Of a DNA stretch of 64,000 nucleotides, positions 4,487-37,000 are shown piece by piece. Each line of letters opens with the position of its first letter. Position 1 is the stretch's first letter. The notes beneath the pieces were generated by a model. That model ran no database searches and was not told the origin of the DNA. It worked only from the letters and a program-made list of their open reading frames with translations. Both the position numbers and the translations under genes were made by a program. Source of the stretch: Auanema rhodensis (Eukaryota > Animalia > Nematoda); contig OZ059895.1 in NCBI GenBank assembly GCA_964057225.1, positions 18,104,001 to 18,168,000 of the forward strand, written 5' to 3'.

Positions 4487-7400
4487 AAAAAATAACGATT
4501 GAGTAAAGTAAAGATAGAACACATAGTGGATGTGGAACCGTTCTTGACTTTGAAAATTGAAATTTAAAAGCACATCTACGGATTCCTCTTTCTACTTAAT
4601 TCAATATTTTGAGAAAGAAAGTGTTGTCGTTCGTGATTGTGGCTTGCAACTTGCCCACACACATAGAAATTTCAAATAAAACCTTAACAACCGTGTGAAA
4701 ACGAGAAAAGAACTGATATGAAGTGAAATTAATATACTTAAATATTTTATGCTTGTAAGAATGCTCTTTTCTAATAAGAATAGATAAACAATAATGGAAT
4801 AGTTTGGAGGTTTACAGCATAAAATGTGACGAAAAGTGAAATGCTGAGCAGTTTTTCCTTCTGATTTCGGAGGGTGTGTGAGAGAAATTGATAACGATAT
4901 AGGCATTGCACATAATGACAAACGACTACATGCTATCAGTTCTGAAACAAAAAGCTAAAATGTTGTTTTTCTTTGATAATTTCCAAATAATATACTGCAT
5001 AATGGCCTAGTTCATATAGGTAGACACAAAGTAGAAATAGGGAGGAATGAGAAAGGTTTTGCAACAAAGGGCGCTGTATGTGATGATGATGACACGTTAT
5101 ACGTTTATGGCCTTCATTTGCATTCATGTTAATCTAAGAATTTTGAGATTGATCTCAGATTTTACCACACTGGAATGAGGGGCAGAGACTAAGAAAGAGA
5201 AAGACAGATGAAGAGAAATAGAGAGAAAATGAAAGAGTGAACAAGAAAATGTGCATATAGTGAGATAAATAGATTAACTGACTTAACGGGCCTAATTAGG
5301 CGGAAAATAATAAATATTATTATAAGTAATATATTTAAAAATATTGGAAACTTTGAAAAAAAAATTTCACATATATTAGAAAGATATGTAAGATATTAAA
5401 CTGAATAATTGGATAATAATGATGTTGATGATGATGATGCTGCTGATGGTGTTTAGGTTATGCGGAATATTGAGCACTGACTGCAAAAAAAAAGAGAGAA
5501 AGCGAGAAAGAGAGACAGGGAATGAGGGAGAAAATAAATGGTTTGTGTATACGAGATTGAACATTCGGTTCGTCGACGTCCAGCTGGTATGAAGACGACC
5601 AAGCCCTTTTTCTTCAGAAGGAGAATAAACATGACCTCAAAACAGTGTATTTAAGGTAAACTCACTAAATCATCAATGTAATAACGATGTGAAGGTGAAG
5701 TAATTTCCGCCATCAAAAGTAATTTTGAATTAGACGAGTGAAAGAGAGAGAGAAAGAGAGTGACGACGGGGGCAGGATTCAAGAGTATTGAGATTTGATG
5801 GTAATTATGCAATAATTATAAAACAATATGAAATAAACTTATTCAAAAACAAAAAAAAATTCTTTTTTTCTCATTTAATGTTTTAAATAAGTTTATGAAA
5901 GCTTAACCATGTATATAATAATCGGACAAAAATTGTATAAAAAAAACAGAATTTTTAGGAAATGAAATAATATCCAGCCATATAACAAAAGTCAAAAATA
6001 TATACATATATGTTATATCAACTAAATAGGCTTTTGCTATAGCCTCTCAGCGTTTCTATGGCACTCGTTGAGCAGATAATTAGTTGCTGGTGGTGAAGGC
6101 TTGGCTGACCATAGAAAGAAGGCTTGTTTCTTCAACATATCTCAGACCTTCATACTTATGTTCATCCATAAATGAGAAAAGTTACGAATATACTGTGTTA
6201 TTCTGAAGATTCAGTTCTTTCTCTCTCTCTCGCTCTCTCTCTTTCTCTCTTCTTCTATCTTTCTCTTTCTACCTATCACTCCACTATCATCCATATATAT
6301 CTCACTCCTGCTCTCTCTTTCTCAATCTTCTGAAGTAAATATTCTCCTTTTTATGTGTTCTAATTTCAACAGATGTTGCGTCAGTAATCTGATCAGCAAA
6401 TCGGTGTTCAAAGCAAATGATAACTGCCGATTACAACATTTGATTGCATGGGTGCCTGCAAGATGGTAGGCAGGTTCAGATCAGTTGCATTGAGTGCAAC
6501 GTTCAGATGATTCTTGAATACAAGAAAACAATGTTATCTTCATCTTTTAGAAAAAATATAGGAAAGAAAATTTGTTTTTTGATCAAAAATAATGGATGGT
6601 GTACTCAAACCAACAAAAAATATATAAGTATATAATGATTCGATGGTATTATAATCCGCTTAAATCGAATTACAATACTTCTATAACCTAGATATTGACT
6701 GAGAGGATATGAGTATGACAGAGCCACTTTTAGGTATTTAACAAGAAAATACAGAACATAAATAGTATGAATAAGAAATAATTTTATGGAATGCTAAAGA
6801 AGAGTTCCAATCAAATCAGTATATAAAACTTCCAAAACGGCTGATAAAACATTTTTTTAATGATAATTATAGACTAATGATATGGCTATAAACGATACTA
6901 GTTATTCATTCAAAGAAAATGGAATTTGGTTACGTTCATTGAAACATATTGAAGAGGAGAGAAGAACTGATAGAAGAGGATAAATAAAGATGTATAGTAT
7001 GACACAGGTCACAAGAAAAGTACAAAAACTGAAAAATATAAAATTTTAACAAGAAAAAAGTTGAAAACCTTGTGCATGAGGCAAATGATGAGGTTGCTTT
7101 TGGATCAAAATGATTCAGATGGAAATCGGATAATTGGATGACCGGCTAGGCCGAATGAGCAGAACCCAGATGAATGAAATGTCGATGAAAGACGAGAAAA
7201 TAACAGATTTGTTCTGAAGACTTCACATGTGTGTTGAAAAGGACCGGGTAATTCAGGAGATCTGAGAGGAAGAACGATTTGATGAACATACTCTACAGAA
7301 GAGAGAGAGAGAACAACATATGATGAGAGAGTAGGGGGTATTCGTTAGTTATGTGTTAGTTATGTATATGACAGTTGTTGGAAAATCTATATATAGATGG

Positions 7401-10400
7401 TGAAAATTGGGACGAATAAAATAAAAATATCCGCCGTCGAATGGCCTATGAGAGTACTGGATATATGCAAATCTTTCTGTTAGCTGAATCGTTAGAAGAT
7501 ATTCGCAGAGTTTATATCGTTGTTGACTGATTATGAACCATCTCAGGTAATTCAGCGGATCGTTATATTCTTGAAAATTGATGTATGTGTGTGATATACA
7601 TGGATATCGGGAAAGGAAGATAGGAACGATTGCGAGGGCAACTAACATGAAGATTTTCAAATTTCTTCTCTCTCTTTCTCTTCGAAGTTTATCTCGCGCT
7701 GTCTACGAACTCGTCGCTGAGCGTACTCGACTATTCGAAAATAACGACGACGGCGTTGTCACAGCTGTCGAACAACTTCCGAAATGGGAACATCATGTTG
7801 TTGTGGATGGTTTGATCCAGATGACCCACAGGCCGTTTAAACAACAACGATTTGGCAACAGCAAGATGAAGAGTAAAAGAGAAAGAAGATTGAGAGCGAG
7901 CACGACGGTGTTGTCTGTATCTTACCATTGAAGATGATGAAGTTTGTACAAACACAGATGAATATATTTCGATTTATTTCGAAAGAATAACCCAAAAAAA
8001 CAGCAAAAATATGAAATCGAAAAATTGCAGGAATTCCAAGCTTGAGACGATAATGATGATGATGATGATGATGATAAGAGATGCAGATTTTAATATTTCA
8101 AGAGCTCGTTAAACAAATCTAATAACAGCAAATTCAAGATTAATTCCAGAGAAGCTAGTTCAAGCTGTTCAACTGATAGAGAAGCATGAAAAACAGGCTA
8201 GACTTGATGCTCGAAATAACAAATTTGAGACTTTTAGCAAAAACGGTAGATTCCTAATATAAGACGGAGGAGCAGTATGGATGGACGGCGGTTAGATGAC
8301 AACAACGATGATGATAACAACTGAATAGATGATAGAAGTGCAGAATGAGAAAAAAAAATGATTAAGGATAGTTATTACATATGATATACTGTGCTTGAGA
8401 AGTGCTCAAAAAGAAAAAAATTAAAGTTTTAGCTCATGACGATGACAGTTTCAAATGTTGTTTACACATACTTAAATCATAAAAGTTACAAATATGGATT
8501 CAAGGTCGAATTCGATATAAAATGAAAAATGAAAGTTTTTTGACAAATAAATCAGTAGATATATAGTATAGATAATATAATAGACTCTCTATCAAATTAT
8601 ATATTTCGCAAATAGGTAAAAGGAAAAACATGTCGGAATGCGGTCGGTGTTACTGCTAAAGCAACTAACGTATATTCTTCCTGTACAATGTCTAAAAGAT
8701 GAAATAAAACATCGAATGCACAATAATTCAGAATATTAAAAAGTTGTAGGTAAGGTTTGTAGCATGAATGCTTGAGGCAACGTCATGAGTAATTCCGACT
8801 ATACATGTATGCTGTCTCAAATCACATCATTCAAATAGCTGAGTCAGGTTCAATCGAAATATACACATACACACAATTAATCTCTTGCATTATATAAAAG
8901 AGGAAATACGATTGAGGAAGAGTAGACGAGAGACTTTTTGAAACAACATTTGAATAGAAACGACAACGAAAAGGGAAGATGACAAAGGAAACACAACCGA
9001 GCTGCTGGCATGAAAACGACTTAAATGATAATTTTACGACAAAAAGAAAGAAAACACATCATTTTCACGTTTTTCACGTGAATCTAACGAACAAATAATG
9101 TCAAATCGGATTGTTTCAAAGATGAAGAATTGATTCGATTTATTGATTCGATTTTTCCATAGAACAGTAGAAATTTCGAACATGACGAACTGAAAAAACA
9201 AACAATATGTAATATACAATAAACTATAAGTGAATTGCTTATTTTAGAACATTGTTATTGGTATTTTCTGTGTTGAATGAGCTTCAAGATATATATAAAT
9301 ATAATATATATGTAATATAGAATTATTCTGATGTTTAAGAAAAGTTCAAACGAGGTATTCGAGAAAAATATAGAAAAACAGAAAAATGAACAGAGAGAGA
9401 GAGAGAGAGAAGAGTGTACGAATAAGGAATACAGAGAAGCACTGCTTTTATTGAATAAGTATGACAAGATAAGCCTGTGTGATCAGCCAAAAGAGTCGAA
9501 AAGTCGATTGAATACAAGGAGAGGTCATGAAAAGTTTTATGAAAAGGAAGGGCATGCTAAGCTAAAGAAAACTATAAAAAGACATTGGAAATTAATTGGT
9601 TTTCTTATGTTATGATACAAAACGAAATGCAAAAAATGCTGTGAATTGTTGGACAAAGTGCTGAAGAACTTGTCTCTTGGATGATGATGATACACAAGAA
9701 AAGGCGAGAAAGAAGAAATAATTCTGTTTTCTCTCTTTCTCACTCTCTTGCGCATTTTCTTTTTGATTTTTCATCAATAAATTGGTAATATTTTCACAGA
9801 AAAGCTGAGATTAGAGAGGATATCAATGCAATGTCTTTGAATTAGTTTTGGGGAAAAAATCTGATTTTTGTGAACGATAACCCGGACTTGAATGTCTATT
9901 ACAATTTATTTCAATGATGATGGAGAATGATTTGAATTGAAGAAGAATTAGTTGGAGATTGCGGTAAATCGGAAATAAATTTTTTTTTCAAGTGTGAACG
10001 ACGAACGGTTGAAATATTTGGCAGAAAGGATAATATTCTGAGTAAAAGTAAGTGAATGATGTTGTGTGAGCATATACAGTTAGTAGATCTCTCTCTCTCT
10101 CATTCCCTCTATATCTCTCTCATCATCTCTTTCTCTCTTTCTCTGTATCTCTATTTTCAACCTATATTCTAGTAAATGTTTCGTTAGAGATTATTCGTTT
10201 ATCCTATGTATTTTCTGGATAGTCATGATCATGCAGATTGCCAAAAACTGACAATATGTTGTCCGAAAACGATGATGATTGAAAGGATGTGGTGGATAAA
10301 GAAGAAAAAGAGAGACAAGTGGCACAGGTACTAGCTGGATGAGCGGAAACATGGCATAAAAGGAAACAACTTGAATGAAAATGCTGGATAATAAGTGGAT

Positions 10401-15858: not shown

Positions 15859-18525
15859 TTAAGAAAGAGGGAGAAAGAGTGAGAGAGAGAAAGAAAGAGA
15901 GAGAAAATCTAACCATATTCGGCATAACCCTTGACCAATCCTACCAGATTGTTAAACAATGTGTAAATATATTGCTTCAAGGTATAATAATAAAATAATA
16001 TAATTATTATTATTATTATTTTATTTTCAGAACTTAGATCATAACAATATTTATATGGAAATAAAACAAAATTTCATAAAATAAATCAGAATATTTATAT
16101 TTGTTTTCCTCACCCCCCCCCCCCTTTCTACAAACACTATTCTACTATCTATACATATAGTTAGTTATATATAATTTATTCATATATGTTTCTATGTGGA
16201 TGTTGAACTGTTTTAATTGAAAATTGAATGTGAATGCCAAAGATCAATCTCAAATCTGTTTAATGTCTCAATAATCCTTCTAAACTAGCATCATATTACC
16301 ATCTTTCTATCATGAATTACTGATTTTAATTCAGAATAAAAAAACACACCCATAACGTCTTCTGCACACATTTATACAGAAGAAGCATGAGAAACAAAAT
16401 TTTTTTGACTTTTTCAAGAGATATATCTGAGCGAATTCTATTCAAATTTTGAAAGACAATACATTTCAGTTGAAAATGAGCAAGGGAAGGAGGAGAAAAG
16501 AAACTTCTGAACTCAGAGTATACTAAGCAAAAAAATAATAATTTCAGTTGAATTTAAAAAAAACATTGTAAAATAGATACATCAATCTCAATAGGCCAAC
16601 AATCACTTGATAATATATAGTTTATTTTGTATTGTTTCAGTAAAAATAGGCTTGTCAAAGTGGCTCAAACATCAAGTTTCTAAAAGTTCATCCTTAAGTG
16701 TAGTTAGTAATGTTTCCGTTTTCAACTAATTCTCAAAGCCTAAATCTTAAAAATGGCTCTTTTTCTTTGAGCTCAAATGTTTTCCAATTCAGATATGACT
16801 AGAGAGTGAAGGGTTGACGAACTGATAACAAAAATTTGTTCCTAAAATAGCGCAACAATATAAAAATTCAAAATACTATGAGAATAGTTAGTTATAGAAT
16901 TGTTAGCAAAGCTAGTAATGTATGTAATATAATCTACTTTAGCAACATGTTCAGCATAATGAGCAGACGACTCAAACAAAAGTAAATTTTGGAAAGAAAT
17001 ACAAGCTGGTAGCAAGTAGAGAGAGAAAGAGAGAGAGAAGGCGTAAAGCAGATAAAGGAGATGAACAGCCTGCAGTGCATGAAAACAGAAAATGAATTGA
17101 ATTATTTAGTTTAATTTTATATAGTTTCAGGAGAAAAAAGGTTACATACACATGATAATCTGTGATCGACCACCATGAAGCTAAACATATCAATAGCATG
17201 GTTGAATTAACTATAAAGGGCAAAAAGCATCCATTCGAAGCAGACCAAGAAGCTTGAATGACCAAATTGATTTTCTTTGGCATCGTTGCCAGAAATAGAG
17301 AGACGGAAGACTAATTAATCAAATGAGCATTTCACTGTCATCACGAGAAGCCGATAAAGCTAAAGAGGGTGCAGGGAGGGCTATAATGAGAGTATAAGAG
17401 GAAGGCAAAAAAAACTGAAATTGAAAAAAAAAGAAATAAATAGAAAACAAAGACAAAAAAAAAGATTCAAAATACTAGAATGACTACAATAATTTTGATA
17501 AAATAGTTGAAAATAGGCACTCCCCCTATTTCATCTTGTTTTGAACTGTGAAAGCTTTTTCAATGAAAAAATCCAAATTTATTCCATTAGTAGCAACAAT
17601 TCATTTCATGAAATAGCTCGATGTTCTACTCAAACATCAGAAGCTAATTCAAAAAATACTGTGAAAAGTATAAACTAAGTTCTCAGTTGATGACCAGAAT
17701 CTGGAAATTTGATTAAATCTCTGAGAGGCTTCGATTATTTTTATGAGCACAATGCTTATTGTGTTCCAATTCATTGAGTACCAGAAAAAAATTACATTTT
17801 CAACACAGCTTTTAAGTTCTCTTCAAGTTTACAAGCAGATCGCCTAACTATTATACATTGTTAAACTTTATCCGTTTACAAGCTCGATATGTCCTTCATC
17901 TAGTATTGAACAATCAGTTGTAACTGCATCATGAATCTGTATAACATACTGCCAATCAGACAATCCCAACAATTCAGGAACTCGATTTGACAGACGGAAT
18001 TAGTGACTGGAGTAGGGGTCATGGTTGCCGGAATTAGAATAATCCTTTCGTCCACAAAGCTATAAGAGGAATACCCAGAGGACGGCCTAAGGACACATGC
18101 ATCTGTATTGCCACAGAGTATCAAAATCTTAATGTTCCACATAAGCATAAGACCTATCCCGAAACAGTTAACGAAGAGGAGAAAGAGAGATAATGAAAGC
18201 AGAGAAAATACTGAGAGAAAGATGGAGGGCAGAAAGAAGAGAGAAGAGTAGAATAGATAAAAGAGATGGTAAGCTAGCTAGAGTGCGAGAGAGTAGAATT
18301 ATAGATTGAGTATGTAATCTGCAAAAGCAACATGTTGTCCGGATGGATTGAAGCGGATAAAGATGCTTCTGATCGAAAGCAATGCTATAATTAGGGAAAA
18401 GACTTTGATCTATCAAAGGGTCTTCACTACAATTACAATGAAAACAACAATAGGAAAAACGTAATCACGCACATTCATGACAAAATCATTTTTTTTTCAT
18501 TATCCAGCTTATACTTCACTACTTA

Positions 18526-19865: not shown

Positions 19866-21383
19866 ATGAAATTTTGTGTTGAGGGAGTAGAGGAAGTACT
19901 TGACAGCAGTCTTTCCCAGGTAGGCTCTTATCATCTTGCAGAATATCCCTTACCTTTCCCTTTATTTTTCTTTATTTATCTCCCGTTCTCCTTCTTTATA
20001 AGATCATAAATTATTTTATACTTTTTTAGTATTCTGATGCTTTCGATATTTGCGGCAAGTCGATGCAAGAAGCTCTTGACCTCATACGATCCGATGGTAT
20101 GTACACATAAGAAGAGATCAACTTTTCCCATACCATCTACATACATATACTTACATCTGCAGGTTATGAAGATCGAAAAGGCTGGAATATTGACTGCAAA
20201 AAAGATGACATCACCGTGTATTACAAAGATATAAATCGGTTACGCTTTTATTCAGCTAGAGTATGTTAACATAATGGTATACTTTATGTTTGACACCCCT
20301 TGAAATTCTTTTTTTTTTTGATTTCAATCATGTTTCATACCCTGATAAATTCAAGCAGTATTATTTTATCTGAACAATCAAACAATAATTTCTATCAATT
20401 CTAGGCCAGCCTTCCAATTAGTCCAGCCGAGGGACATGAGATTAACTGGAAGAGTTGTGAGAAGATGTCTGATTGGAATAGCAACATCAAATACAGTGAA
20501 CGAATTGTAGATTTAACCAAAAATACTGATATTATTCATGTAATTTCTCAATGCATACTAGTCTTCTTCATATTTTTTTATTTCAAGTACGGCAGCAACA
20601 GTGTTATGATGGTGAAAGGACGTCAATTTCTTTGTGGACGTATGCAACATGTGTTCTCTGGTAATCACGTCATTTCGGCCAAGTCCTGTACTCTAGATTC
20701 CGTACCAGATGCTAAGGATGCTGTCAGGTAATTTTCAAGAATACTCAGAAAGACCAAAAAGAATTGCTGCTACTGAGACTTTCACTTTTCTCTGGTCACT
20801 GTTAGTTTCGTGGCTAGTAGAATTTGTTTTCTTTATTGTCTATCTTCGGACACGATAAATAGAATAAATAGCTCTTGTCAAATCAGACAATTTAACCGAA
20901 CGACTACGAACGCAAAAAACTAAGCGGATCTAGGTTTGCCTGTTGATGGCTTTACCCATAATGGCCATAACCTCAAATATCATTAATCTGCAGATTGACT
21001 ATATGAACGTGAACTAAAAAATGCATCATAAATCGAATTACATTAGTGTCCTGATGTAATAACAACAATTTTAGAGCGCACCTTCACCTCGCGTTCGGCC
21101 GATTTCAAAACGATCCCAACAACCCATCAGGTTCCATCTATGACTATACATTATGTATGGATTTAAAAGGAATGATGCCTCAAACTTTACTAAATCAGGT
21201 TGGAATTATCGTTCAGTATTCGAAAACAACCAGTTGCACTAATTGGAATAATATTCTGCTAAAAGGATTTTATTAGATTTCACAAAACAATCAACATTAC
21301 AGATAATGGGTAAACTCTTGTTGTCAGACATGGATAATACGAAAAACCATTTTATTCAATATGCGAGGACAAAGAATAACTAA
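19866..21383 (+). CDS. Stand-alone START (StAR-related lipid transfer) domain protein, about 232 aa, 7 exons
   Basis: Exons 19866-19919, 20030-20096, 20163-20260, 20405-20539, 20588-20727, 21075-21198 and 21303-21383 join in frame (699 nt) with GT..AG ends. Motifs GWNID, MSDWNSNI, GRQF and CMDLKGMMPQTLLNQ match the StAR pattern (W..N, RDF, DLKGWLP..IINQ). TTTTCCAG lies 6 nt before the ATG, a probable trans-splice site. Confidence 0.88.
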
Positions 21384-21426
21384 GGTAAATAATTGAGTAG
21401 TAGACATAGAAGCATTTCACTATATA

Positions 21427-21432
21427 AATAAA
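21427..21432 (+). terminator. Poly(A) signal of the START gene
   Basis: AATAAA 44 nt after the TAA stop. Confidence 0.6.
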
Positions 21433-21818
21433 GCTTTCCAATTGACTTACTACATGTCTTTTACCTTGTTCATAAAAAGAGAAATGATTTTCTATCCTAA
21501 ATATAAAAGATAAAACTACAGCATTCCTAATAAAATCAATTGTGCACAAAACGTGAAATAATATACTTCATTTATATATAACGAACAACTTGTTTTCAAC
21601 TAGAAATGCTCGTAATTTTGAGGTAAAATGCTAATTTAATGCATGAGCGTATTCTATTCATAACTAAAGCAACAAGCAAATCATAAATTGGTCTCGTTGC
21701 ATCTTACAGTACGAAATTTGAAAAAGTGTGGATGATTTGCATATGCAGCTTTATTTTTTAATTAGCACGTGGAGAGAGCGGTTGAATTTCGTTCGAATGT
21801 GTTTCAATTCCTAAAACT

Positions 21819-24800
21819 ATGCTGAATTTACAACTTGGTCTAGGCTATCTGTTGGGGAATTTACCGAGGTACGTGATACTTCTTCATCATTCAGTCTTCC
21901 GTCTAGTTCACCTTCCATTTATTTATTTTATTACGGCGTTAGTTCCACATTTTTACCGACTTTGTAATCTAATCCTCGTTATGAGGTGGTGTGGCGGACG
22001 AATTTCTCAATCAAAGGATATATTGGGGGCCTCAAACCTCCTCGCCACACCTCCTTTGTTTGTGTTGGCAGCCAAGACCGCAATTCTGCCACCTGCGTCT
22101 GACAGTTTTGAACTTTTTTTCAACAAAAACTCTACTTAATTGCTTAACAAAGCTAGATATCTAAACTGATTTTTTTATTGGACTCCTCCATTTTACGATA
22201 ATCCTCATGTAATTATTCTTTCATATCTTTTATTGGATATTTATATCTATGTATTTTTATACGTGTTATATATAACAATGTTTCATTTATGTATATAATT
22301 ATGACTTTATCAGAACTTTCTCATCTGATCTGATCGAAGATCTTTATATTTTCTAACCGAACGAACGGCCGTCCTTTTTTTATTTACCGTACAGATTGGC
22401 TTTGGTTGACTGCATACGTTGGCCTTCTTGTCAAATGAACTTACTTTCCTATCTGATCTCACATTGTTTTTCACCAATATTATAGAAGCTATTCATTCTT
22501 GATAGTTCTATATTAAGGTATTATTTCTAAATTTACAATATCTGCATAAGAAGGTAGTGATTATAGCTTAGTATTATCTTATTGCAGCTTATTTTACGTT
22601 TATACTCGAGGCTTCATGCAAGATTTGTGTCGCCTTTGTGTGTATCTTCCGTATTCCAAATCCGGTCTAGATTCATTATCATAATTATAATAGAACCCAA
22701 TTATTATTCTGAGCTTGATCTTCGCTTTTTGCCATCTTATCCTCTTCTTCCCTGTATACATTAACTGGTGTTAAAGCTTTAGCTTCACAATTTCGCATAT
22801 AATTCCATTCTATACTAACCATTGTGACAAATATTACGATGAAAAGTATTATTTTTCATCCGCATAACCAAGACATTTTTTCTTTAATCCATAGCAATTT
22901 TCAATTATGCTTTGTGTGACTAACAGTACCCATGGATTGCTTTCATTTGCCTGTATCTAAGTTTTTTAGCCCAGATATTTGCGTTAGCTACTCTGTGTAT
23001 CGTGTTTCTGCTTATAGAAAATATATAATGGCAGTCTCTCTGAGTCGTGAACCTAAGAGATCCTCCCTTGTTTGCTGCCGAAAGGTCAAGATCATCCTAT
23101 CTCGCAATCCGCCTCATTTCTTTATTAACTTTCATCCTCTCCGATAGGAAAATTTCTATTTTCTTTGATTAATCGATATCTTTTGTGATCCCTTGAAATA
23201 TCCAGTCCGCTGACTTCTCGGGGAATTCTCACGACGACCATAGTTTTGAAGAGCCTTTGTTTAGACCTCATACTGGCTGTTTATCTTTCCGTTGTCGATA
23301 TAAAATTATGTCCATTATGCTCTGAAATTATTGCGACCATTATTATGGCTCCAATATGAGTTTTACTGCACATCATGATGGTACACCAGAACATTTGATT
23401 TAATTGCGTAGGCAAGTGTGACAGCTTCCATTTCTTGTTGCTCTATTCAGTATCTATTTGCCGAACTCAGATCGTCTAGTATGAGGTTTTGAGTGTCAAC
23501 CATGCGCCAGTCTCTATTTTCTTGTCTCGATACGCCTAGGATCCAAAGTATGAAGACCGGATTGGGAGGAGAAGAGAAAAGGCTGTAGCCTTAGCGGCAG
23601 CAAGTCAGAACTCACTTTTCATAAAACTTGAATTCATTTCTGAAGAATTATTGGCTGCCATATTTTCTATTTTTCATAGAATATTCCTTTTGACGTTTTT
23701 GATACTTGATTGTCATGTTTGGCTAAGATCAATCGATCGATCGCAGAACAATGAGAGGATTATATGAACATGTATAACTAAAATTTGCATGTGAGGGAAG
23801 GGTGTTGGTTCTGCGCTATATTTTCCGATTGATTCTCTGATGTTCTAGTAGGAGCAGACCTACCTGATTGTGATTGGTCGTCCTTGGCATTACGCTCACT
23901 TGAATGGTTTAGTGCTGTGTCTACCACAATCCGTTCTTACAAATCGTCCTGTCCTGCTAACTTCATCGAAATACTGCGACATCGACTTTCTCGCAACGTC
24001 GACTAGTTTGCCTTCCTGTCTTTTCTCCTTACATGTTAGCTTTTTTTGCACCTTTCACCGCACTCTGAACATATGGCTTACTAGCAACATCGCCCAGTGT
24101 TGATATAAAACTTGTAATTCCTTCATAGGTTCATCGATTTTCTTTCTTCATTGTGTATAAAGACATCTCGCATTTACAACGTCTTCATAGGAATAGCTTT
24201 GATATAGCCTTGATTTAAACATTGAATGTCTTTGTTTTTCTTGTACGCATCCCTTGACATCTGTGAATGGACCATATAACGAGTCGCTGTCTTTCGCCAA
24301 TCTTACTACTATACGGCTTTCAAATGTTGGCATGCTGAAGCTTCATCCTTCCGTTCTGCTGCTTGATGTTTCACAGCTTGTGCTATCTTTCTCTTTGCTT
24401 CATAACATTTTTAAGGTGACCCTATAAGTCGCGTCTGCAATGTAATTTAATTTAATCTGTCCGAATTATTTATAGCCATTAGGTGATATTCCAGCTGTAC
24501 CGTTGAAGCCGAGTTATCGCTCATTTTTTCTGCTTGATACTCGTTCTTCATATGTACTCCAAACTGGTTTATCCTGACAGATTAGGATAGGTTTTGCGAT
24601 GATCACCGCATGTCTGCGACAGACATCCGTTCGGGGACTCTGTGTTCTAATTATTCTGTCATCTGAGCACTCTGCTCTACTCTTCACCGTGGTTGTTTTT
24701 GTATCGCAAATTGGTTTCTTTCGCATCTTAATGATTAATGGCATCTCATTCCGGTTCTCACTCATTTAGTGCGCATTGTCCTTATTTCCTGCTCTTATTT

Positions 24801-27800
24801 TCGGGTCAATTTTTCAACAAAAAAAAAGCATTTTTGTATGGTCTGTCACTAATTTTATTTCTTTGACACTGTTGCGGCATTTATTGTCCCTTATTGCTGT
24901 CTACGAGCGGTTCTCTCAATATCGATCTGGATGTTGCGGGATTCATAAATTGTTTCCACCAGACAAAACACAGAACTTGCCAAGCTTCAGATTCCATTAA
25001 CCAGAGACGTTGCAAATGGTTTCTTGTTAATGTCTTGTGATGTTTCCGCTGGCTTGTTCGACTCCACTACGCCCGCCATCTGAAAGCGTTTCCGTATTTC
25101 CGTTTATAGTCCGTATAACATATATTAACATATCGCATAAACTACTCTCCATCATCTCTTTCTATGGAGCATCCGTGCATCATGTCTTTCGATACTTTTA
25201 AAAAATATATTTCTTATAATAATCTGCTATGTTTTGATTATTACTATGATTTCTAATCTGGCCTGCCGGAAGAATCTGGCATCCTGCTCCATTGCTGCAT
25301 TTATGGTGTGACATTGGTTGTATCTCTCATCATTCTTCCCATTTCCACTGTTCAAGACGGATATTGCCTTTTCTGTTCTCAATTCTCTCAAATATTGCGC
25401 GTTTACTTACGTCTAAGATGACACTTGGTGCTTGCAATTAGTTTTCTTTCTATCACATCACTTCTCTTTTCTACGAATTATCCCAAGAGCTTCTCTCACA
25501 TCTGGGATGTATATGTGCTTTTTTATTCTTCGGAATTTATTCCAGTTCATTTCAGACCGAAGATACAACGTTCGTTCACATTACCAATGGTGATGTTCGA
25601 CCAAGTTACGGTCGCCAATACTGAAAACAAGTGGGATCATGATGAAGTAGTAAGTCTTTTTTATTTTCTTTTAAAGTTCACAAAGTGATTCGTGATTGTC
25701 CGATATCTCAATGTTTTTTTCATTTTGAATTCCTTAACTTTTGTTAGTTTAATAGAACATGTTTCTCTTCTGCGACCACTTGTTAACAAGTCTTTGCTTA
25801 AGTCTCCTCAAGAGGTTTTCTTCGTCGGATTCATACTTTTATACATTGCCGATGTTAAGATTTTGAATAAGCATCATTATAGTAGAATATTGTTAAATGT
25901 AACCCTTAGTAACTTTATCGCAAGGATATCTGAGTACAAAAGAAGCTTATACGGGGGTTCATGTTTCGACGTTTGCGCTAACAGAAATTATGTGGTTTCT
26001 GCTGGTCAGCGTCATCAGTGCCTGAATTTTCCAGTTCCCGACAGGTTTTCGTAACGAGATCTTAAGCAATTGTCTTTCAAACCATATTTTGTAGATAAAT
26101 ACTTGTGTTAGAAAAGTGTGCATGTTATGATAACAGTATTACAGCACATAATTATTCTACTAATATGTTACAAAGTTAATCTATGCAACATTAGCATTGA
26201 TAATTTATATTTTTTTCAATAATTGTGATATTAACACCAACTTACTTCTTTGGTTATGTTCATTAATGTTTAATAGAGTTGCTTTTGTCTTCCTCTTCTT
26301 TTCACTCTCTTTCATATTTGCCAAATGATCCGGAATAATTTTAAAAATACCACTTCTATTAGCCGTAGGATTCTTCCAATTCCTCCTGTGCTCTTTATTC
26401 ATTTTTATGTTTTATTGCATAACATCATCCTTATTGAACACAAAGAAAACTGTATTTCTATTCCCAAGAGATCTCGCTTTTTAGATCCATTTATACAAAA
26501 ATATGATGATTGCAACAACATGATTTTAAGATTTTCCGTAACGCTTCTTGATTTCTATCATAAATCTTTCTTAACCTGCGTGTCTCTCAACAATCGCATT
26601 TGTTTCGCGTTTTGCAACTTATTCAAAGCCATCGGGTCTATATCAACCCGTTTGTTGTATCGAATAGTATATGCTACTTTGGTTTACAATTTTATTTACG
26701 TATAAGATGAAGTATCCAAGTATAGCCAGCTTAGCGGATTTGAAACCATTATATGGATACATATGAGCTGATTGCCTATAGATATTTATTTCTGGGTTGG
26801 CTTGAAGAAATATCTTTCGTATTTTCGTTCTACAGCCCACGTTCCTTTCTTGGACATTTATTTCTATCTGTCTCACAGCAGCACTTTAGCTTGAGGGTGG
26901 TGCGGCGAGCAGTTGCTTAAGCAGTGCTGGGTCAACAAGACGACTCTTGTATACCAGCTATGTAAAACATTGTGAGACGCACCGGTGAGTCTCTCACTTT
27001 TCTTACTGATGCTTCTCCGTTGTCGTCTTCTTCTTCTTCTTCTCCTTCTTCATCATCTTATTTCGAAACGGAGACCTGGCTGTTCTAGAATAGCAAACCA
27101 TACTCATTTGTTTATACTCAGTGATTTGACTAGGCGAAACTCGTCTCCTCTTACATGTATAGCTTATTGTAGTTGTGTCCCGCACTTTTAATTTCACATT
27201 AACTTGTAGGTTAATATGCGCGGTTCACTTTTATGATATATAATTTAATCATACTCAATTTTTCGATTTGTCCTCTATGCATTGATGTTCTTAATGTACG
27301 ATGTACTGCCATCATTCCTTCTGATTTCTCTGGTATTGACTAAAGTAGATCTAACATATACTGGAATGAATCTTCGCCAAGGTCTCTAAGTCAGCCAACG
27401 CGATTCTTATCATCATACTACCTCGAATTCTCTATGCGAACATCGTATGTAATTTCTATGAAAGTCCGTCACGAACTCTCTTGTCTTTGAATATTCCTTT
27501 TCTTTCTTTTTTCGCTCTTTTTGCTAGTGCTTTTGGCTTCTGAGTTCACACAGCTGGTCCAGCTGCAAGTGTCAACATGTCTCATTTTAAACACATTTTC
27601 GATGCTCTTGTAGGTGAAATTCTCTTCCTTTATTACACATTAACTTAAGGCTTTTACACCGATTTTCATAATAGATATATGAGAATTCTTTTTAAAACTC
27701 ATTCATATCTGCTTAGTATGAGTTAACTAATAGTACCCTCCTATGATTGGGGTGAAGGCCGCGTAGATTACATCGGTGCAGCCACGTATTTCATGACATC

Positions 27801-29104
27801 GTGCATTTTCTTGCTTCTTATCCTCACTCCGATCTCTTCTTCTTATTCTTCACAGTCATTACACATTTTTGCTAGAGCATCCCGAGATCTACAAAGTCTT
27901 GTCGACACAGATTCGTCAATTGCCAGATTTCCTTTAATGGTAACGATCGCAACAACAAGCAGTTTCCACATATTTTCTTTTATAATTATGATCGACTGTT
28001 AATGCTTCATACATCTACTATTTATCTCTGTCAAAGACTTGTATTTAGCAAACATCCATGTTAAAGAATAGGATAACGTCGTTTCTAAATAGCCTTCACT
28101 GTTCTGCATCCGCCAGAACGTTGCGTTTATCTATATCCCACGATTATCTTCTGTCAGTTCATTTAGCTCTTCTTCTGTATGATCTCTTCGGTCGTGCGCT
28201 ATCTGTTCCAAAGTAGTCGCACTGTGTGTGTTGTCTCGTTCTGCGCATCTTCTGACTGAAGCGGAGCGAAGACGACTACCCGATTGCCGACTAACCATCC
28301 AAATATTCTGTTTGTCTGCCTTCATCTTCAATGCAACAGTCAGTAATCCGTTTGCACTGGCTTTTCTACCGAATCACATTTTTTCTCATGCGCTTCTCTT
28401 GTCGCTACTAGCACGACTCTTCCACACGTAAATTGTTCTTCCTCAAAATCTTATTGATTGATTACTTGTAAGTAGTGGTAATGGTTCTATGCCCTGCTGT
28501 GTCTTGTTTTCGCCGACTCTGAAATGTCTTGAAATTTGTCCACCTTTGTTTTCTCCTAATATCAGTTTTCTGTTGTTTCCATCTAAGTCACATCATTGGC
28601 ATCTATTCAATTAGAAAATGACCGATCTGGTTGTAATGATTGACCTTTCTTCTATCATTAGCTATCTCGCATTTTTCCAATCTTGACGCTACCAATATTT
28701 AACGAAGTGTCATTTTATTGCAAACTTCATAAGCTTTTTATCTACCGGCAAAGCTATGAGATAATCAGTTTTCTTCTTAGCTAGACAAAGAATTCATTAA
28801 GGCAATTATCCCTTTCTAGTTCTCATCCCAGCCAGATTAACTAATAGCTTGTAGAAGATAAGTTTAACCTCTTTCCTGGCTACTTCGATTAGCTCGCATC
28901 ATTCACTATTAAATGTCGTTCTTGTTGTCAAAGTTGTTTTTATTTCAATTCATAACTTGTGTGTGCTTGTGCTAACCGGGCGTTTTCAGAAGACAGTGAG
29001 CGGAAGCTGTCGTGCGTCGCTGACACCGCCCACTACTAACGAGGGACTCGTCATGACGGCATCTGGCACTGATCACGTAGCTGCTGCAATTCACAACACT
29101 AACG
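21819..29104 (+). CDS. asd-2: Distal N-terminal exons A, B and C of a long asd-2 isoform
   Basis: A 21819-21868 (MLNLQLGLGYLLGNLP, phase 2, GTACGT), B 25556-25649 (TTTCAG, RPKIQRSFTLP..WDHDEV, GTAAGT, phase 0) and C 28990-29104 (TTTTCAG, KTVSGS..IHNTN, GTACCG, phase 1). Phases chain 2-0-1 into the common exon at 30403 with no stop. Confidence 0.65.
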
Positions 29105-30111
29105 GTACCGATACCTACTACTACTATTTTTTTCTTTTTTTTTGCTTCTTATACTCACGATTGAACTCACAAAAATTCAAAACCTGATAGATACTAATAA
29201 GAAAAAGTACGGGAAGAAATTGAAACTATGAAGATGATTATGGTCAAATGAAATAGTTGAAGTTCGGGAGTGCGAAAGGAAGCTGTATTCTTTCTCTTGT
29301 ATGATGTAGATAATTGTAGGGGTAGTAATTTTCCTTATGGAAGATAAATCACCTCTCTTGTTTTCTCCTTAGTGAACTGGTCACCTTGTTTTAACTGATT
29401 GTCGTCTTCGTCCTTGGTTGCCTGTTGTCTCAAATCTAGCCGCTCAGAATTGATACTGTCGCTGCGATTATATCAAGGTTCGCATAAAATGAAAGTATTC
29501 ATCATGTAAAGATTAGCGGGATATTTCCATGTTATCATTAAAACTTGAGAATTTTACGCTAAACGAGACGGGGGGACAACTGATATCAGTTATTAACATG
29601 AAAAGGTCAAGTGTAAAAGTAACAAAAACCGGGAAGGGAAAGTGCATCATTTTTCAATTACGAAGCTTCTGTTCAAAATGGCCTGAGAGAAAATTCATCG
29701 AAGATATGAATGCAATGAGATGAAGTAAAAAGATTTTCTTCTAAAACAACGAACAACTGCTCAGACACCTTTGAATAGCAATATCTTCTTTCTATCTATG
29801 TGTATGTGTGTGCGGCAGTATGTTCAGTCATTCTGGCAACAGCGGCATCAACAGGAGACATAGCAGAAGAAGGGGAGAAATTACATAGAGATGAAGGATG
29901 AGAGAGAAAAAGAAAGAAATGAAGTAGACTGTTGTCTTCCGAGCACGTTGTAATGCAGGGCAGAGCATCTCTATAGACCCATAGGTTCTTCTGTTCTGCC
30001 TGTCGGATAGGTCAATTTGGTGGAAGGGTGCATCAACGCATCACTTCAGTCGATATTTTTTCTGACGGAGTTTGCCTGCTTTTACCTCCGACTCGACAGT
30101 TCAAGAGTCTA

Positions 30112-31791
30112 ATGGCGGAAGATAGCTCCTCTGCTCCAACTACGCTCGCAAGCAATCCTCAAGCCTTCTGTGCTGGTACCTCCTCGTCATGCAGCACTCC
30201 TGTCGTTTCTTCTGTTATATCAGAAAGTATTATTCGGCCTGGTATGCGTCAGTTTATTTGGTTTTTCTTCAAATGTTTTAGTGAAAGTCAAAAAATTCTT
30301 CCGGGTTTTATATTCTTTTTACAATTTAGGGATATGTTCTAGCTTCTTTATTATTTTAAATTTGAATTTCTGTCAATGCGTTTACTAAGAAAGACATTTC
30401 AGTTCTAGTTGCCAATGCAGCCAATCCACAGCAGTATACAGTTGAATACTTATCACAATTGCTCAAGGATAAAAAGCAACTGGCTGCTTTCCCCAATGTT
30501 TTCCATCACTTGGAAAGACTAGCAGATGAAGGTATGATACTTAATCACCCGAAAATAATTTATTTCTGACTTTGTTTCAGAAATTAGCAAAGTTAGAGTA
30601 GCTCTATTCCAATTCGAATTCACAAAAGAGCAAATGATGCTGCCTGATCCTGATGGCGATGTTCAAGTAATCACTGAAAAAGTTTTTGTCCCAGCTAAAG
30701 AGCACCCAGATGTGAGTACTCCTTCATATTAATGCTATAATTTTCCAATATTCTAGTATAATTTTGTTGGAAGGATATTAGGGCCACGTGGTATGACAGC
30801 AAAGCAGTTGGAACAGGAGACGGGTTGTAAAATTATGGTCCGTGGTCGTGGATCGATGAGAGATAAAAAAAAGGTATTGATGAAGCATTTCCCTATAAAT
30901 CTTTATTTTTTTTTTGCAGGAGGAATTGAATCGTGGAAAACCTAACTGGGAACATCTTTCTGAGGAATTGCATGTCCTTATCCAATGCGAAGATACACCA
31001 AATAGAGCTCGTGTAAAGCTGGCTCGTGCAGTTGATGAAGTCAAGAAGTTACTTGTTCCAGCTGTTGGTTTTACTGACAATTTCTATTTCATATTTTTAT
31101 ATTTTCAGCCTGAGGGTGAAGATGAATTAAAAAGAAAACAATTAATGGAATTAGCTATTATTAATGGCACCTACAGGTCGGCTAATGAACAGGCTGCTGC
31201 GGCTGCAGCTCAGTTGGCCGCTAAACAACCAAATACATTGGCTGCCGCTTTACGTAAGCAATTTATTTAACGATATATCGTCAATTCATAATTTTGTAGA
31301 AGCTGCTGCTTTAGCCCAAGCTAGGGGTGTTACAATGCTGAGTGGATCTCCATCTTTAGCTCGTTCCCCTACTCTGTCGGTTGCCGGAGCTCCCATTGTC
31401 ATGAGCCCCGGAAGGGGTCAACCCTCAAATACAAATGCAACTCAACAGATGATTCAACTTCAATCTCAATTAGGAGCTGCTGCAGTTGCTCAAAGCAGTG
31501 CCGCAGTAGCAGCGCAACAGGCTGCTCTTCTTCAGCAACAACAAGCAGCTGAATATCAGCAACTATTGTTGAGGTCTGCTTTTCCCAAAATCAAAAGTTG
31601 AATGAAAGTTTTCAAATTTCAGTCAGGGAATTTCTTTTGATGCATTAACTGGAACGGCTGTTCAGTACCAGCCCCAAACAGCTGCATATAATGCTGCATT
31701 ATTAAACCAACAGTATGCAGAATATGCTGGAGTGGATTTAACTTCTGCTCAAGCTACTTCTGGTGGGTATCGCCTAAGAAAATGGGCTTGA
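30112..31791 (+). CDS. asd-2: STAR/Quaking-family RNA-binding protein ASD-2 (QUA1-KH-QUA2), proximal-start isoform ending GGYRLRKWA
   Basis: Exons 30112-30241, 30403-30531, 30581-30711, 30757-30873, 30920-31063, 31109-31253, 31300-31573 and 31623-31791. QUA1 [31 protein letters not shown]; [35 protein letters not shown]; QUA2 [23 protein letters not shown]. The Ala/Gln tail with YAGVDLTS matches ASD-2 rather than GLD-1. Confidence 0.93.
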
Positions 31792-32338
31792 TTATTTTAA
31801 ATATTTTTAAATTTGTTTCTATAGGAGAAGAGAAAGCGAGAGAAGTAGTCTCTCTCTTTCCCACTTAATTTATTTTTAATTTATCCACATTTTAATTTAT
31901 TGCGAATTCTCTTTATTGAATGATCTACATTCCTAATTTTTTACGGTGGTTCACTTTATTCGTTCAAACATTCCTTAAACTTTCACATAGATCTCATACC
32001 TTTGTATGTCTTTTCGTGACTGATTCTGGAACGTATTACCATTTTTTCAGCACTTCCAGAATCGTCTTAACATTTTAATTCAAATTTTTAAATTTATTTA
32101 TTCATTTTACAACAAAAAACGCAGTTAATTCATCACTTACTGAACCGCATGATAATGGCAATCCGCTATATTGCTTTTTATTAACTAGCACTTTCGATTA
32201 TTTTCGCGTTTTTTTTCTCGAAAAATAGTTGCCAAAAATCTAATATTGGTATTAATATTTTGATATTTATAACGAATCCTTATTATATTTTGGGGAATCG
32301 TAACAACATTACATGTTCCTAACATAGCTAACGTTCAG

Positions 32339-32400
32339 GTGCCATGATTAACCAACGTCGTGTATTGGGAACGTCGAGAGACCATCCTTACAAGCCATAG
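32339..32400 (+). CDS. asd-2: Alternative last coding exon of asd-2 (GAMINQRRVLGTSRDHPYKP*)
   Basis: Internal donor G|GTGGGT at 31762/31763 and acceptor GTTCAG ending 32338 are phase matched. The encoded RR..RDHPY resembles the QKI-5 and HOW(L) nuclear tails. Confidence 0.8.
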
Positions 32401-34029: not shown

Positions 34030-37000
34030 TCATTTTTTCCTCCGTTTTTCCGACTTACTTAACAAATTGTTGGAAAGTTTTAAAGCAATAGTATTGACAC
34101 GCTGTTCAGCCTGAATTTGCATACATTAATTAAGTAACTAAGAATGACACAATTGTACCTGTTTCTTCAAAAACTGTTCTGCTTTCGAGGAATCTGTCCT
34201 CGAAATGCGTCCATTAGCGCTACTGCTACCACGTTCATTTATTATAAAAGGCTAAAAATTGCATGGATTAAGAGATAAAAAATGAGAGCAAACCGTGAAA
34301 TCGCGAATCACTTGTTTGTGTTCAGGATATTCATTAAATGCGTAACTTTGAGTGTTTATGGGGAATCTATTGCGCGGTGGAATTTTTTCAAAAGATCTCT
34401 GTTGACGATCTATTTGGTACTCGCAGACAAATATATCTTCCTCCTGAAAGGGAAATTAGGCAAGCAAACTTTGAAAAAGTCTCACTCTAAAGGTGGGGTA
34501 TTTGGGACGTCCTTTACACCAAATATCCGCATCAAGCACAAGGCAACGTCCAACAACAGCATCCAAGGGTAGAGTGTCATAAAAACGAGTAGCAAACACC
34601 TGCAGTATATTTCTGGTATTCGAAGTCGACAATATAAATCTATCAAACCTCATTTTTGTTAAAAATTCTATTAGGATCACAAATTGTTTCATGAGGTCTA
34701 GCATAATAGAATCCGAAGACAAAACGGTGACCCGTTGGAGCTACAAATATTCTTTCCACTCGGAATGCTCGTAAATCCTGCAAAAGATTCAATTTAATTT
34801 TGACTGATTATCAGCTTAATTACCTTTCTGTCAAACAACTTAGGCGGAAGAGACTCAGTACTTGGAGGAGCAATAGATTTATATTCTTCACTTAACCCAT
34901 CCTTTTTTCTATTGCTCTTTCCACCATTTTCCACCAACAACTTCAGAAGTTTCTTATGTTCGTCTCCAGCAGCTCTTTCTACATACACAGTTTCATTCAG
35001 TCGAACTTGTATTTTCCTATTGTTGTTTAAAGCCTATAAAAATAATATGAATGAACGATACTACAGAAAATAATACTTTGTAATATTCACATCCTGCTAG
35101 TCTAATTTCTGGCTGTTTGGCCAGAATTACATCGCATGAAGGGATGTCTTTTCGTATAGCACCAGAACAGAATTTGCAAGTGAAATCCTAAAATTAAATG
35201 ATAACAATCCATACAAATGTAAACAACATACTCCATTCTGATCAATTCCATCTAAGCATTCCGAATGTAGCCAATAATGACATTCATCACATTGCATCAT
35301 ATGTCCATCCTCTTCAAGAGATCCGCATTCACAACGAACTGCATCATCACCTTCCTTCGCGGTATCTTGTGGCCAAGAGATATCAGGATCATAACTTCCA
35401 ACCTGAAAGCAGGTAAATAAACGAATAATAAGCAAAATTTTAACTTACCGGGTCCCCTACATCCAAATATGACAAATTAACTTCACGATTCCTAGTCCTA
35501 GCAACCGTTTTCTTTTCTGTTTTTGAATCGGAATTGGTAGCAGATGGAAGATAATGTTGATGTAGAGCTCTAAAAACCAAAAGTTGAAATGAATAATAAG
35601 GCAATTCAAAAAGAATAAGAAGATATGATTGAAACTTACTGAAAGACTCGATCAAAGTCATCGTCATTCAAGCGCTCAAGCCAACGGTCAATCAAGTAAC
35701 TGAATGTATCCGAGACATCATCTTTTTCCTTTCCACTTTCAACGTCTTTCACGAATTGTTTGAGAAGGCCATATTCCTTAAGGGCTTTGAACGGCAATGA
35801 TCCGTCAATACGTCGAATTCTTAAATATATTCAACTTTATGTAATAATTTTTTTTATGGCATACCTCAAAGCTAATCCATCCACTACTCTTTTTAATTTG
35901 CCATCAAGTGTTGGAGGTACAATAGGAGCGGTAGCAACAACTGAATAAGTAATAATTTCGTGATATGAGGGGTGATTCTTACATCGTCGTTTTGCTAATT
36001 CAATAGTTTTCGTACGATTACGTATAAGAAAAACGTTGCCTGCTCTTATCTGCTGCTCGTCAAGGAAAGAAACATCGTCACTTGCAGCTAACACCTAAAA
36101 ATACAAAGCATTACGATAATATTGATTACCAAAAACATACGGAATTCCTAGATCTCATAACAACGCCAGAACAACTAGGAACTGGACAATTAATGCACGG
36201 AATCTCGACAGGTAATAAACGATTCATGTCAACAGTAATTTCAGATCCAGAAGCTATATCGAATAAGGAAAAGAGGCCAGCTCTTCGTTTTCCATTAATT
36301 GACCTTCAAAATAAGAAGTAAACAATGTATTTAATAAAAAAATAATCTTACCAAACTTCTATTCTGCTGTTTGGGCGACAAGAATGTCTAACATAGCGAG
36401 TGATATTTCCTTTTTTAGTTGCATCAATGTAAAGTATAGATGATATAGCCAAAATACACGGTTGACAATTTTCATCTTTGTATGTTTCAACTCGTTTAAT
36501 AGCCTCTTCGAAAGTGATTACTTCACCCGCATATTCACCCTGAACACATTTTTAATATAAAGCCATGTGGTGTTAATAAACTAACCATAAATTCTCCAGC
36601 TCGCTTTGACTGACGAGTTTTTAAGATACGTTTTCCGCGATTTCCCGTAGATATAAGATGTCTTACAACATCTTCCCTCCAGAATTTCTTAAAAAAAACA
36701 ATATCAAAAAATGCATTAATATTTAAATAAATAACAATAAAATTCAATATAACGTATGGGAAAAATAATAATCAACACCGAAGTTAACAAGTTTCACATG
36801 ATGTAATTGCATGAGGATAGTTTTGTGAATTTAAGATAATTGACAGAATAACAAACTAACCTTATTAACACATAACGATGTATGACAATTCTGAGGACAT
36901 TGAACGCAAAGCGCTCTGTTCACGCATTCTGCATCCGATGTGCAAGCTCCTCGTGAGCAACCACAATGAACAATAGGAGAACTCCAACATAAGTTAGAAT

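Follow-up and report, generated by a model that had tools for sequence, protein, structure and literature searches.

The 64,000-nt stretch analyzed here (the window) is from the nematode Auanema rhodensis (contig OZ059895.1, positions 18,104,001 to 18,168,000), and its forward strand carries a gene that, judged by homology, is the orthologue of asd-2, QKI, and HOW, with a QUA1-KH-QUA2 STAR domain. The subject of the analysis is a short internal exon of this gene, termed exon C, together with the CUAAC and GUGUG elements within it and around it. When a STAR-domain exon and then its best full-length match were used as queries (phmmer and profile search), nematode ASD-2 proteins were retrieved, including those of Caenorhabditis, and the precomputed Pfam domains of the matched proteins were STAR_dimer and KH. 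The nearest protein was from Auanema sp. JU1783, and its N-terminus matched exons B, C, and D near residue for residue. An earlier examination of the letters of the window (the sequence-only reading) had proposed that ASD-2, with SUP-12 in muscle, forces skipping of exon C and thereby exposes its own transcript to nonsense-mediated decay (NMD). All coordinates which it gave for motifs, acceptor, donor, and exons were found to be correct by direct reading.

The 5' part of the gene has several first exons (Table 1). Exon B is homologous to the N-terminus of the JU1783 protein and to that of the 486-amino-acid isoform of C. elegans, in which the homologues of exons B and C are used internally. 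C. elegans isoforms a and b begin exactly at a conserved methionine within the exon C homologue, and the Met-Thr at this internal start was kept in every orthologue seen. ASD-2b is the major muscle isoform of C. elegans ASD-2. Exon C is an exon of the distal-promoter isoform and, by homology, would also be the coding exon that opens the main muscle (ASD-2b-type) isoform. The sequence-only reading had recognized the former but missed the conserved methionine. It also missed a further first exon, 1b, which sits in the intron between exons C and D and joins exon D in the same phase as exon C. The position of exon 1b matches that of the first exon of the C. elegans 445-amino-acid isoform, likewise located between C and D. 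Compared to JU1783, exon 1b is homologous and fast-evolving, with 66% identity and saturated synonymous sites. The non-coding exon A was placed from a 133-nt loose contig end 5' of exon B in one run, the final 30 letters of which map uniquely to 21837-21866. The three-promoter layout known from C. elegans asd-2 is present in the window.

RNA evidence was taken from transcript contigs of four wild-type-like runs of a single study; such contigs drop rare variants. GT..AG joints were found in all four runs from exon B to exon C (25649^28990, depth 37-47), from exon C to exon D (29104^30403, depth 56-96), and from exon 1b to exon D (30241^30403, depth 21-28), and the downstream introns of the STAR domain were also spliced out. 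A 115-nt unitig lay exactly on 28990-29104 at a depth of 85-97. Since both flanking joints are present in the contigs of four runs, the boundaries of exon C are real, and the exon is spliced into asd-2 mRNA as the sequence-only reading had held. A second unitig (29075-30240) begins in the final 30 nt of exon C and extends without a break into and along the intron. It may represent pre-mRNA plus exon 1b or transcripts failing to use the exon C donor, as flat depths do not separate the two. RNA coverage was also seen at about 28170-28989 in three runs which had none further upstream; it begins near 28170-28280 and continues unspliced into exon C at a depth of about 6, and suggests a second promoter just 5' of exon C (or an outron). 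The depth of exon C exceeds that of the B to C joint and the upstream intron together by about 40. A third input of this size (a spliced leader, trans-splicing or another upstream exon, e.g., A joined to C) was considered and not adopted, as it is hinted at only and the depth arithmetic is too rough.

The acceptor of exon C reads ttttcag/A at 28989/28990 and the donor G/GTACCG at 29104/29105 (direct reading). The joined exons B, C, and D translate without stops into the QUA1 region and helix of the STAR protein. When exon C is left out, the joined exons B and D read ...DHDEVF followed by a stop, the first two codons of exon D being TTC TAG (30403-30408), just as the sequence-only reading had stated. 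When the exon C donor is left unused, the reading frame runs into a TGA in the intron. Both predicted failure products therefore carry a premature stop. In phase 0, exon D of JU1783 (around position 17476 of its locus) has TAA as its very first codon, and no immediate stop was found in this phase in Diploscapter or Caenorhabditis. The donor of exon C is as weak as had been claimed.

Table 1. Features of the asd-2 locus of A. rhodensis. Positions are those of the window; a slash marks a splice boundary. STAR sites are predicted from motif matches.
Feature	Position	Strand	Remarks
Exon A, distal-promoter first exon, non-coding	21734..21868	+	5' end approximate; donor GAG/GTACGT
Exon B	25556..25649	+	ATG 25587; ends in phase 0; spliced to exon C in four runs
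TGTGTGTG	28958-28965	+	Direct reading
UGUGUGUGC, candidate SUP-12-type GUGUG(C) element	28958..28966	+	24-32 nt 5' of the acceptor; identical in JU1783
Intronic CUAAC	28972..28976	+	-18 to -14 of the acceptor; branch-point-like position
Exon C	28990..29104	+	115 nt; phase 0 to phase 1
Exonic UACUAAC, perfect STAR-2/QKI hexamer UACUAA	29034..29040	+	Retained in JU1783 despite an adjacent Thr-to-Ala change
In-frame ATG, Met of VMTAS, presumed ASD-2b-type start	29053..29055	+	Homology with C. elegans isoforms a and b
CACUAAC against the donor, deeply conserved element	29097..29103	+	-8 to -2; hexamer CACUAA fits
Weak donor GUACCG	29105..29110	+	4/9 matches to CAG/GTAAGT; joint lowest of the eight donors in the gene
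UACUCAC	29152-29158	+	Downstream intron; UACUCA is a weaker GLD-1-type variant
ACUCAC	29165-29170	+	Downstream intron; absent from the sequence-only reading
In-frame TGA if the exon C donor is unused (intron read-through)	29185..29187	+	Ends the exon C-frame open reading frame 28957..29187
UACUAAU	29192-29198	+	Downstream intron; hexamer UACUAA fits
Exon 1b, alternative first exon (coding part)	30112..30241	+	ATG 30112; donor G/GUAUGC; spliced to exon D; 5' extent somewhere in 29105-30111
Exon D, first common exon (QUA1)	30403..30531	+	TTC TAG at the start when read in phase 0

Exon C was the best-conserved exon between the window and JU1783, with 95.7% nucleotide identity compared to 79-94% for exons D-G. 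Its synonymous divergence (pS) was 0.067 (2 of ~30 sites), while that of the STAR-domain exons D-G was 0.28-0.85 (62 of ~111 sites; Fisher p 6e-7), and its dN/dS was about 0.5 compared to 0.07 or less elsewhere. The flanking introns were found to be 96% and 88% identical upstream and 84% identical downstream, against 44-50% beside exons D-G and an intron background of 53%. Synonymous sites are constrained over the full length of exon C, and the constraint ends about 60 nt into the next intron and in this way tracks the splice sites. Further downstream the alignment decays save for identical islands at UACUCAC, ACUCAC, and UACUAAU. The peptide encoded by exon C is fast-evolving between genera. 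A regulated exon is usually marked by such a pattern, in which synonymous sites are frozen and the introns on either side conserved although the encoded peptide is poorly conserved. The same trend, although weaker, was seen between C. elegans and C. briggsae, where pS was 0.42 for the exon, 0.33 for its last 20 codons, and 0.62 for the STAR domain, and where a conserved 22-nt block containing GUGUGC or GCGUGC lies 5' of the acceptor. RNA structure was rejected as the cause of the synonymous constraint, the region 28940-29200 folding no better than its shuffles (z +0.64). A hidden small RNA was rejected as well; a search of 28000-30500 against Rfam gave no family, with two snoRNA models on the minus strand far under threshold. 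Two intronic blocks (29350-29470 and 28550-28650) were 82-94% identical to JU1783 amid a background of about 50% and could act as promoters or enhancers of the start sites at exon 1b and exon C. The fold of 29330-29490 was no better than that of shuffles (z +1.0), and this block had no Rfam match.

The comparison was extended to nine species of five genera: A. rhodensis (the window), Auanema sp. JU1783, Diploscapter pachys, Mesorhabditis belari, Trichostrongylus colubriformis, C. elegans, C. briggsae, C. angaria, and C. auriculariae. The C. elegans and C. briggsae loci were taken via their longest isoforms, and P. pacificus, in which the N-terminal region is built differently, was excluded from the counts. 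The exon C orthologues were 115-196 nt long, with a length of 1 mod 3 in 9/9, and all nine donors were weak and lacked a G at +5. The exon was found to end in CUAA(C/U)G/GUA in eight of the nine species. Whereas the residue before the invariant Asn varies (Thr, Pro or Ala), its codon is always xCU (ACU, CCU or GCU), so that the substitutions hit only the base outside the CUAAC core. U was present at the synonymous position in 6/7 lineages (binomial p ~0.009). The donor-adjacent site is UACUAA in Diploscapter and Mesorhabditis, where it fits the STAR hexamer NA(C/A)UAA, the in vitro motif by which all sites were judged here. For STAR-2, another name of ASD-2, the preferred sequence is UA(A>C)U(A>>C)A, in which the first position alone can vary and U is favored there, UACUAA being optimal in vitro (PMC2905418).

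At the acceptor, GUGUG or UGUGU was found within 70 nt 5' of exon C in seven of the nine species, compared to 1/10 for the constitutive acceptor of exon D (p 0.005), and it takes the form GUGUGC in Auanema, C. elegans, and C. angaria. Exon D has a perfect STAR hexamer of its own (UACUAAG, 30388-30394) 9-15 nt 5' of its acceptor; it was rejected as part of the module as it is not kept in JU1783 or most other species, and the exon D acceptor could for this reason serve as a negative control. CUAAC, CUAAU or UACUCA was located 45-115 nt into the downstream intron of exon C in six of the nine, including C. elegans, C. briggsae, C. angaria, and Trichostrongylus. The intronic CUAAC at the acceptor was present only in both Auanema genomes and Trichostrongylus (uugugCUAAC), and not in Caenorhabditis, Diploscapter or Mesorhabditis, and the internal UACUAAC was found in Auanema alone. 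Of the motifs which the sequence-only reading had placed at exon C, the donor CUAAC and the upstream GUGUG are thus kept in most species, but the internal and the intronic acceptor sites are not widely conserved. A conserved choice of ACT AAC codons, for which the sequence-only reading had proposed a test, was rejected for the internal site, being seen in Auanema only. The invariant element is the CUAAC at the weak donor, and it points to regulation of this donor no less than to skipping driven from the acceptor. No CUAAC was seen near the acceptors of the ordinary introns of this gene.

A second candidate regulated site was found further 3' in the gene. The terminal exon that encodes a QKI-5-like nuclear tail (GAMINQRRVLGTSRDHPYKP) has tandem CUAAC at -22 and -13 of its acceptor (32319-32341), and the same spacing is found in JU1783 and Trichostrongylus. 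Diploscapter and the four Caenorhabditis species have one CUAAC or CUAAU at most 80 nt from this acceptor, and Mesorhabditis has none. Conserved CUAAC at a second site of the same gene supports ASD-2 as the reader of the module at exon C.

Based on the conservation of motifs and donor between species and the low synonymous divergence, exon C very likely carries a conserved RNA-level regulatory module. That ASD-2, the leading candidate, reads it, which would make it an autoregulatory splice module under a STAR protein, we hold to be about an even chance (probability roughly 0.5). The CUAAC and GUGUG elements agree with a STAR protein and a SUP-12-like partner as regulators. In this mechanism, ASD-2, a nuclear splicing factor known to bind CUAAC, would bind the module and set the share of exon-C pre-mRNA that is productively spliced, and a GU-binding partner, e.g., SUP-12, may help at the acceptor. 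ASD-2 positioned on -6 to -2 would occlude the weak donor and give negative feedback, with or without a block at the acceptor. The outcome would be skipping in distal-promoter transcripts, which then meet the TTC TAG of exon D, or intron read-through to the TGA in any exon-C transcript including those of the ASD-2b type, and the failed splice products would decay. Binding by ASD-2, the sign of its effect, the role of SUP-12, and the decay of failed products are what we infer from the sequence comparison. If ASD-2 is the reader, we lean somewhat to negative over positive feedback, because a protein at -6 to -2 falls inside the footprint of the U1 small nuclear ribonucleoprotein on a donor that is already weak.

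Parts of this arrangement are known from other systems. For PTBP1 exon 11, autoregulation by frame-shifting skipping and NMD has reportedly been demonstrated in both steps (Wollerton et al. 2004). Exon C resembles it in having a length which is not a multiple of three, motifs of the encoded protein flanking it, and a premature stop upon skipping, whereas its skipping and NMD sensitivity are predicted from sequence. ASD-2 itself reportedly acts on CUAAC repeats in intron 10 of let-2, a collagen gene, to choose between mutually exclusive exons (Ohno et al. 2008). The intronic CUAAC downstream of a regulated exon and ASD-2 (here as candidate) are common to both cases, but that of let-2 is without feedback. 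In intron 1A of C. elegans unc-60, ASD-2b on CUAAC repeats and SUP-12 on UGUGUG cooperatively repress a 3' splice site (PMC3469465). Like this intron, the exon C acceptor has CUAAC and a UGUGUG stretch side by side, at most ~35 nt away and in part conserved between species, with a putative branch A in the same small region and a non-productive product expected to be an NMD substrate. Unlike it, exon C has a single, lineage-restricted CUAAC at the acceptor and its best-conserved CUAAC in the exon at the donor, and the target would be the regulator's own gene. QKI, the mammalian orthologue, regulates its own transcripts, and no change was detected in the Qk5 NMD isoform in that study (PMC5695090; PMC5548867). 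The two cases have in common an orthologous STAR protein, its own ACUAA-type motif in its own transcripts (here predicted), and the involvement of isoform choice of the same gene, and the asd-2 nuclear-tail exon also has CUAAC at its acceptor. They differ in that the targets of the described QKI loops are the choice of 3'-terminal exon, the accumulation of RNA, the 3' untranslated region, and translation, and not a frame-critical 5' exon.

Among the readings in which ASD-2 acts, one that must be weighed seriously against occlusion is that the weak donor is activated. ASD-2 at the donor and on the downstream UACUCA, ACUCAC, and UACUAAU would here activate the donor, so that the exon-C isoforms, including the muscle ASD-2b type, depend on ASD-2 in a positive feedback or lock-in. 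We regard this as possible though the lesser prospect, and its share is counted inside the even chance given above. QKI reportedly activates exons whose weak 5' splice sites pair poorly with U6 (bioRxiv 10.1101/2025.09.04.674271); exon C resembles these, as resemblance only, in its conserved weak donor with poor +4 to +6 pairing, the ACUAAY-type motifs nearby, and expression of the gene in muscle. Activation is also in line with the lack of +5G in all species and the STAR-type sites downstream of the donor in most of them, with the C. elegans exon C homologue being the first exon of an isoform made in muscle, where ASD-2 is abundant, and with the donor being well used in bulk RNA. However, the QKI sites are intronic, whereas the invariant site of exon C is exonic, at -6 to -2, and overlaps the U1 footprint. 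When an RNA-binding protein acts on its own pre-mRNA, the effect is in most cases negative. Moreover, upstream CUAAC with UGUGUG is a repressive arrangement in unc-60 (PMC3469465). The specific loop of the sequence-only reading, in which muscle ASD-2 and SUP-12 block the exon C acceptor, exon B is spliced to exon D, and the transcript is removed by NMD at TTC TAG, is a special case of ASD-2-read autoregulation. It has UGUGUGUGC (-32 to -24) and CUAAC together in the 14-32 nt 5' of the acceptor as the unc-60 module requires, GUGUG kept there in most species, and the immediate stop in the window and JU1783 in its favor. Against it, UGUGUGUGC is accompanied by one CUAAC at -18 to -14 and not by repeats, this CUAAC is missing at the acceptor in three genera, and the most conserved element sits at the donor, where the loop does not need it. 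The same acceptor may also serve muscle ASD-2b-type transcripts, which the loop would harm if they use it. The sequence-only reading is thus partly supported overall, while its full chain of muscle, SUP-12, skipping, and NMD seems improbable. A variant, promoter-coupled self-proofreading, is to a similar degree doubtful. Muscle ASD-2 and SUP-12 would shut the exon C acceptor so that distal-promoter transcripts splice B to D and are destroyed, and exon-C-started transcripts would escape, their ASD-2b-type output being throttled separately by ASD-2 on the donor CUAAC. If true, one STAR protein would use two self-sites on one exon to choose between promoter products and to set its own level, in an arrangement kept in rhabditid nematodes for several hundred million years.

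Several observations weigh against an ASD-2-read splice module. The joint of skipping (25649^30403), the third of those named in the sequence-only reading and the only one not seen, was found in none of the RNA contigs of the four runs; this is absence of evidence only, because contigs drop rare variants and NMD would remove the product. The weak donor is used efficiently in bulk RNA, and in C. auriculariae the donor-adjacent site is lost (CCAACG). A literature search of incomplete coverage gave no report of ASD-2 autoregulation or of asd-2 as an NMD target. The donor-adjacent sites of Caenorhabditis (CCUAAC) and Trichostrongylus (GCUAAU) misfit the strict in vitro hexamer, as does the UGCUAA context (28971) of the intronic CUAAC, and this CUAAC may serve as an ordinary branch point or as a STAR site. 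The misfit in Caenorhabditis is in line with the reading that the module is real with a reader other than ASD-2, which we consider possible but unlikely. The CUAAC at the acceptor would be an SF1/U2 branch point, its A lying 15 nt from the acceptor at a typical branch distance, the GU stretch would serve SUP-12 or CELF alone, and the donor CUAAC would be read by another factor or tune U1/U5/U6 pairing. SF1 is a KH-QUA2 protein with the same core recognition (PMC2905418), and the conservation of GUGUG requires no ASD-2. On the other hand, ordinary introns of the gene lack such a CUAAC, and a branch point explains neither the exonic CUAAC at the donor nor the UACUCA and UACUAAU islands downstream. 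The constraint could also be unrelated to splicing and reflect the 5' untranslated region, start-codon context or promoter-proximal or enhancer DNA of an exon-C-started isoform, combined with protein constraint on the x-Asn-Gly/Val junction. The conserved methionine with the ASD-2b start and the RNA coverage entering exon C from upstream agree with this, and a YAACGG-like DNA motif (TAACGG or CAACGG) lies within the same letters in 8/9 species. Since protein-level conservation includes the Asn codon of the motif, just part of the motif is free to vary. Yet the constraint extends over synonymous positions throughout exon C and follows the splice sites, the codon before Asn changes its amino acid and keeps CU, and the weak donor is itself conserved, and we find this explanation improbable. 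Finally, an A/T-rich genome yields CTAAC-like words often, and the densest spot may have been picked. CTAAC occurs 47 times on the plus strand of the 64 kb, and exon C is the sole place on that strand with three in 150 nt (about 0.3 such clusters are expected per strand). Five STAR-type sites in 261 nt, counting CTAAC, ACTAAT, TACTCA, and TACTAA, make it the densest spot on either strand of the window. In a first-order Markov simulation of a 64-kb strand, 13/200 (6.5%) reached five sites in 261 nt somewhere, and the chance falls to about 1% only if the test is restricted beforehand to the 12-kb asd-2 transcript. Since 13 of 200 simulated strands match it, motif density alone is marginal, and as sufficient proof it was rejected, not being significant window-wide. 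The arrangement at exon C is nevertheless beyond chance because it is conserved in other genera, and with conservation at fixed positions across genera and the freezing of synonymous sites, chance is largely refuted and very improbable.

Elsewhere in the window, CTAAC is densely clustered in just one further place, at about 7344-7500 on the minus strand, with four in 150 nt. With respect to neighboring genes, JU1783 has a START-domain gene 5' of asd-2 and a SET/PHD/BAH-domain gene as its downstream neighbor on the opposite strand (positions 20386-25192 of its locus). PHD-like open reading frame fragments were found at 34100-36100 on the minus strand of the window, and as this is the matching place, the local gene order is common to the window and JU1783.

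Quaking and Held-out-wings, of which ASD-2 is the counterpart in nematodes, are master regulators of splicing in muscle and glia. The literature search gave no description of how the ASD-2 level and isoform mix are set. Self-regulation of splicing factors via unproductive splicing is already well known, as is that of QKI; what would be unusual here is a self-motif that abuts a weak donor and is kept in five or more rhabditid genera. The comparison between species supplies a precise target that can be tested in C. elegans. Should ASD-2 have no action at exon C, the near-frozen synonymous sites and the conserved weak donor still need an explanation. If it does act there, self-regulation in the Quaking family would reach beyond vertebrates to nematodes, and would move from the choice of 3'-end isoforms to a frame-critical exon at the 5' end.

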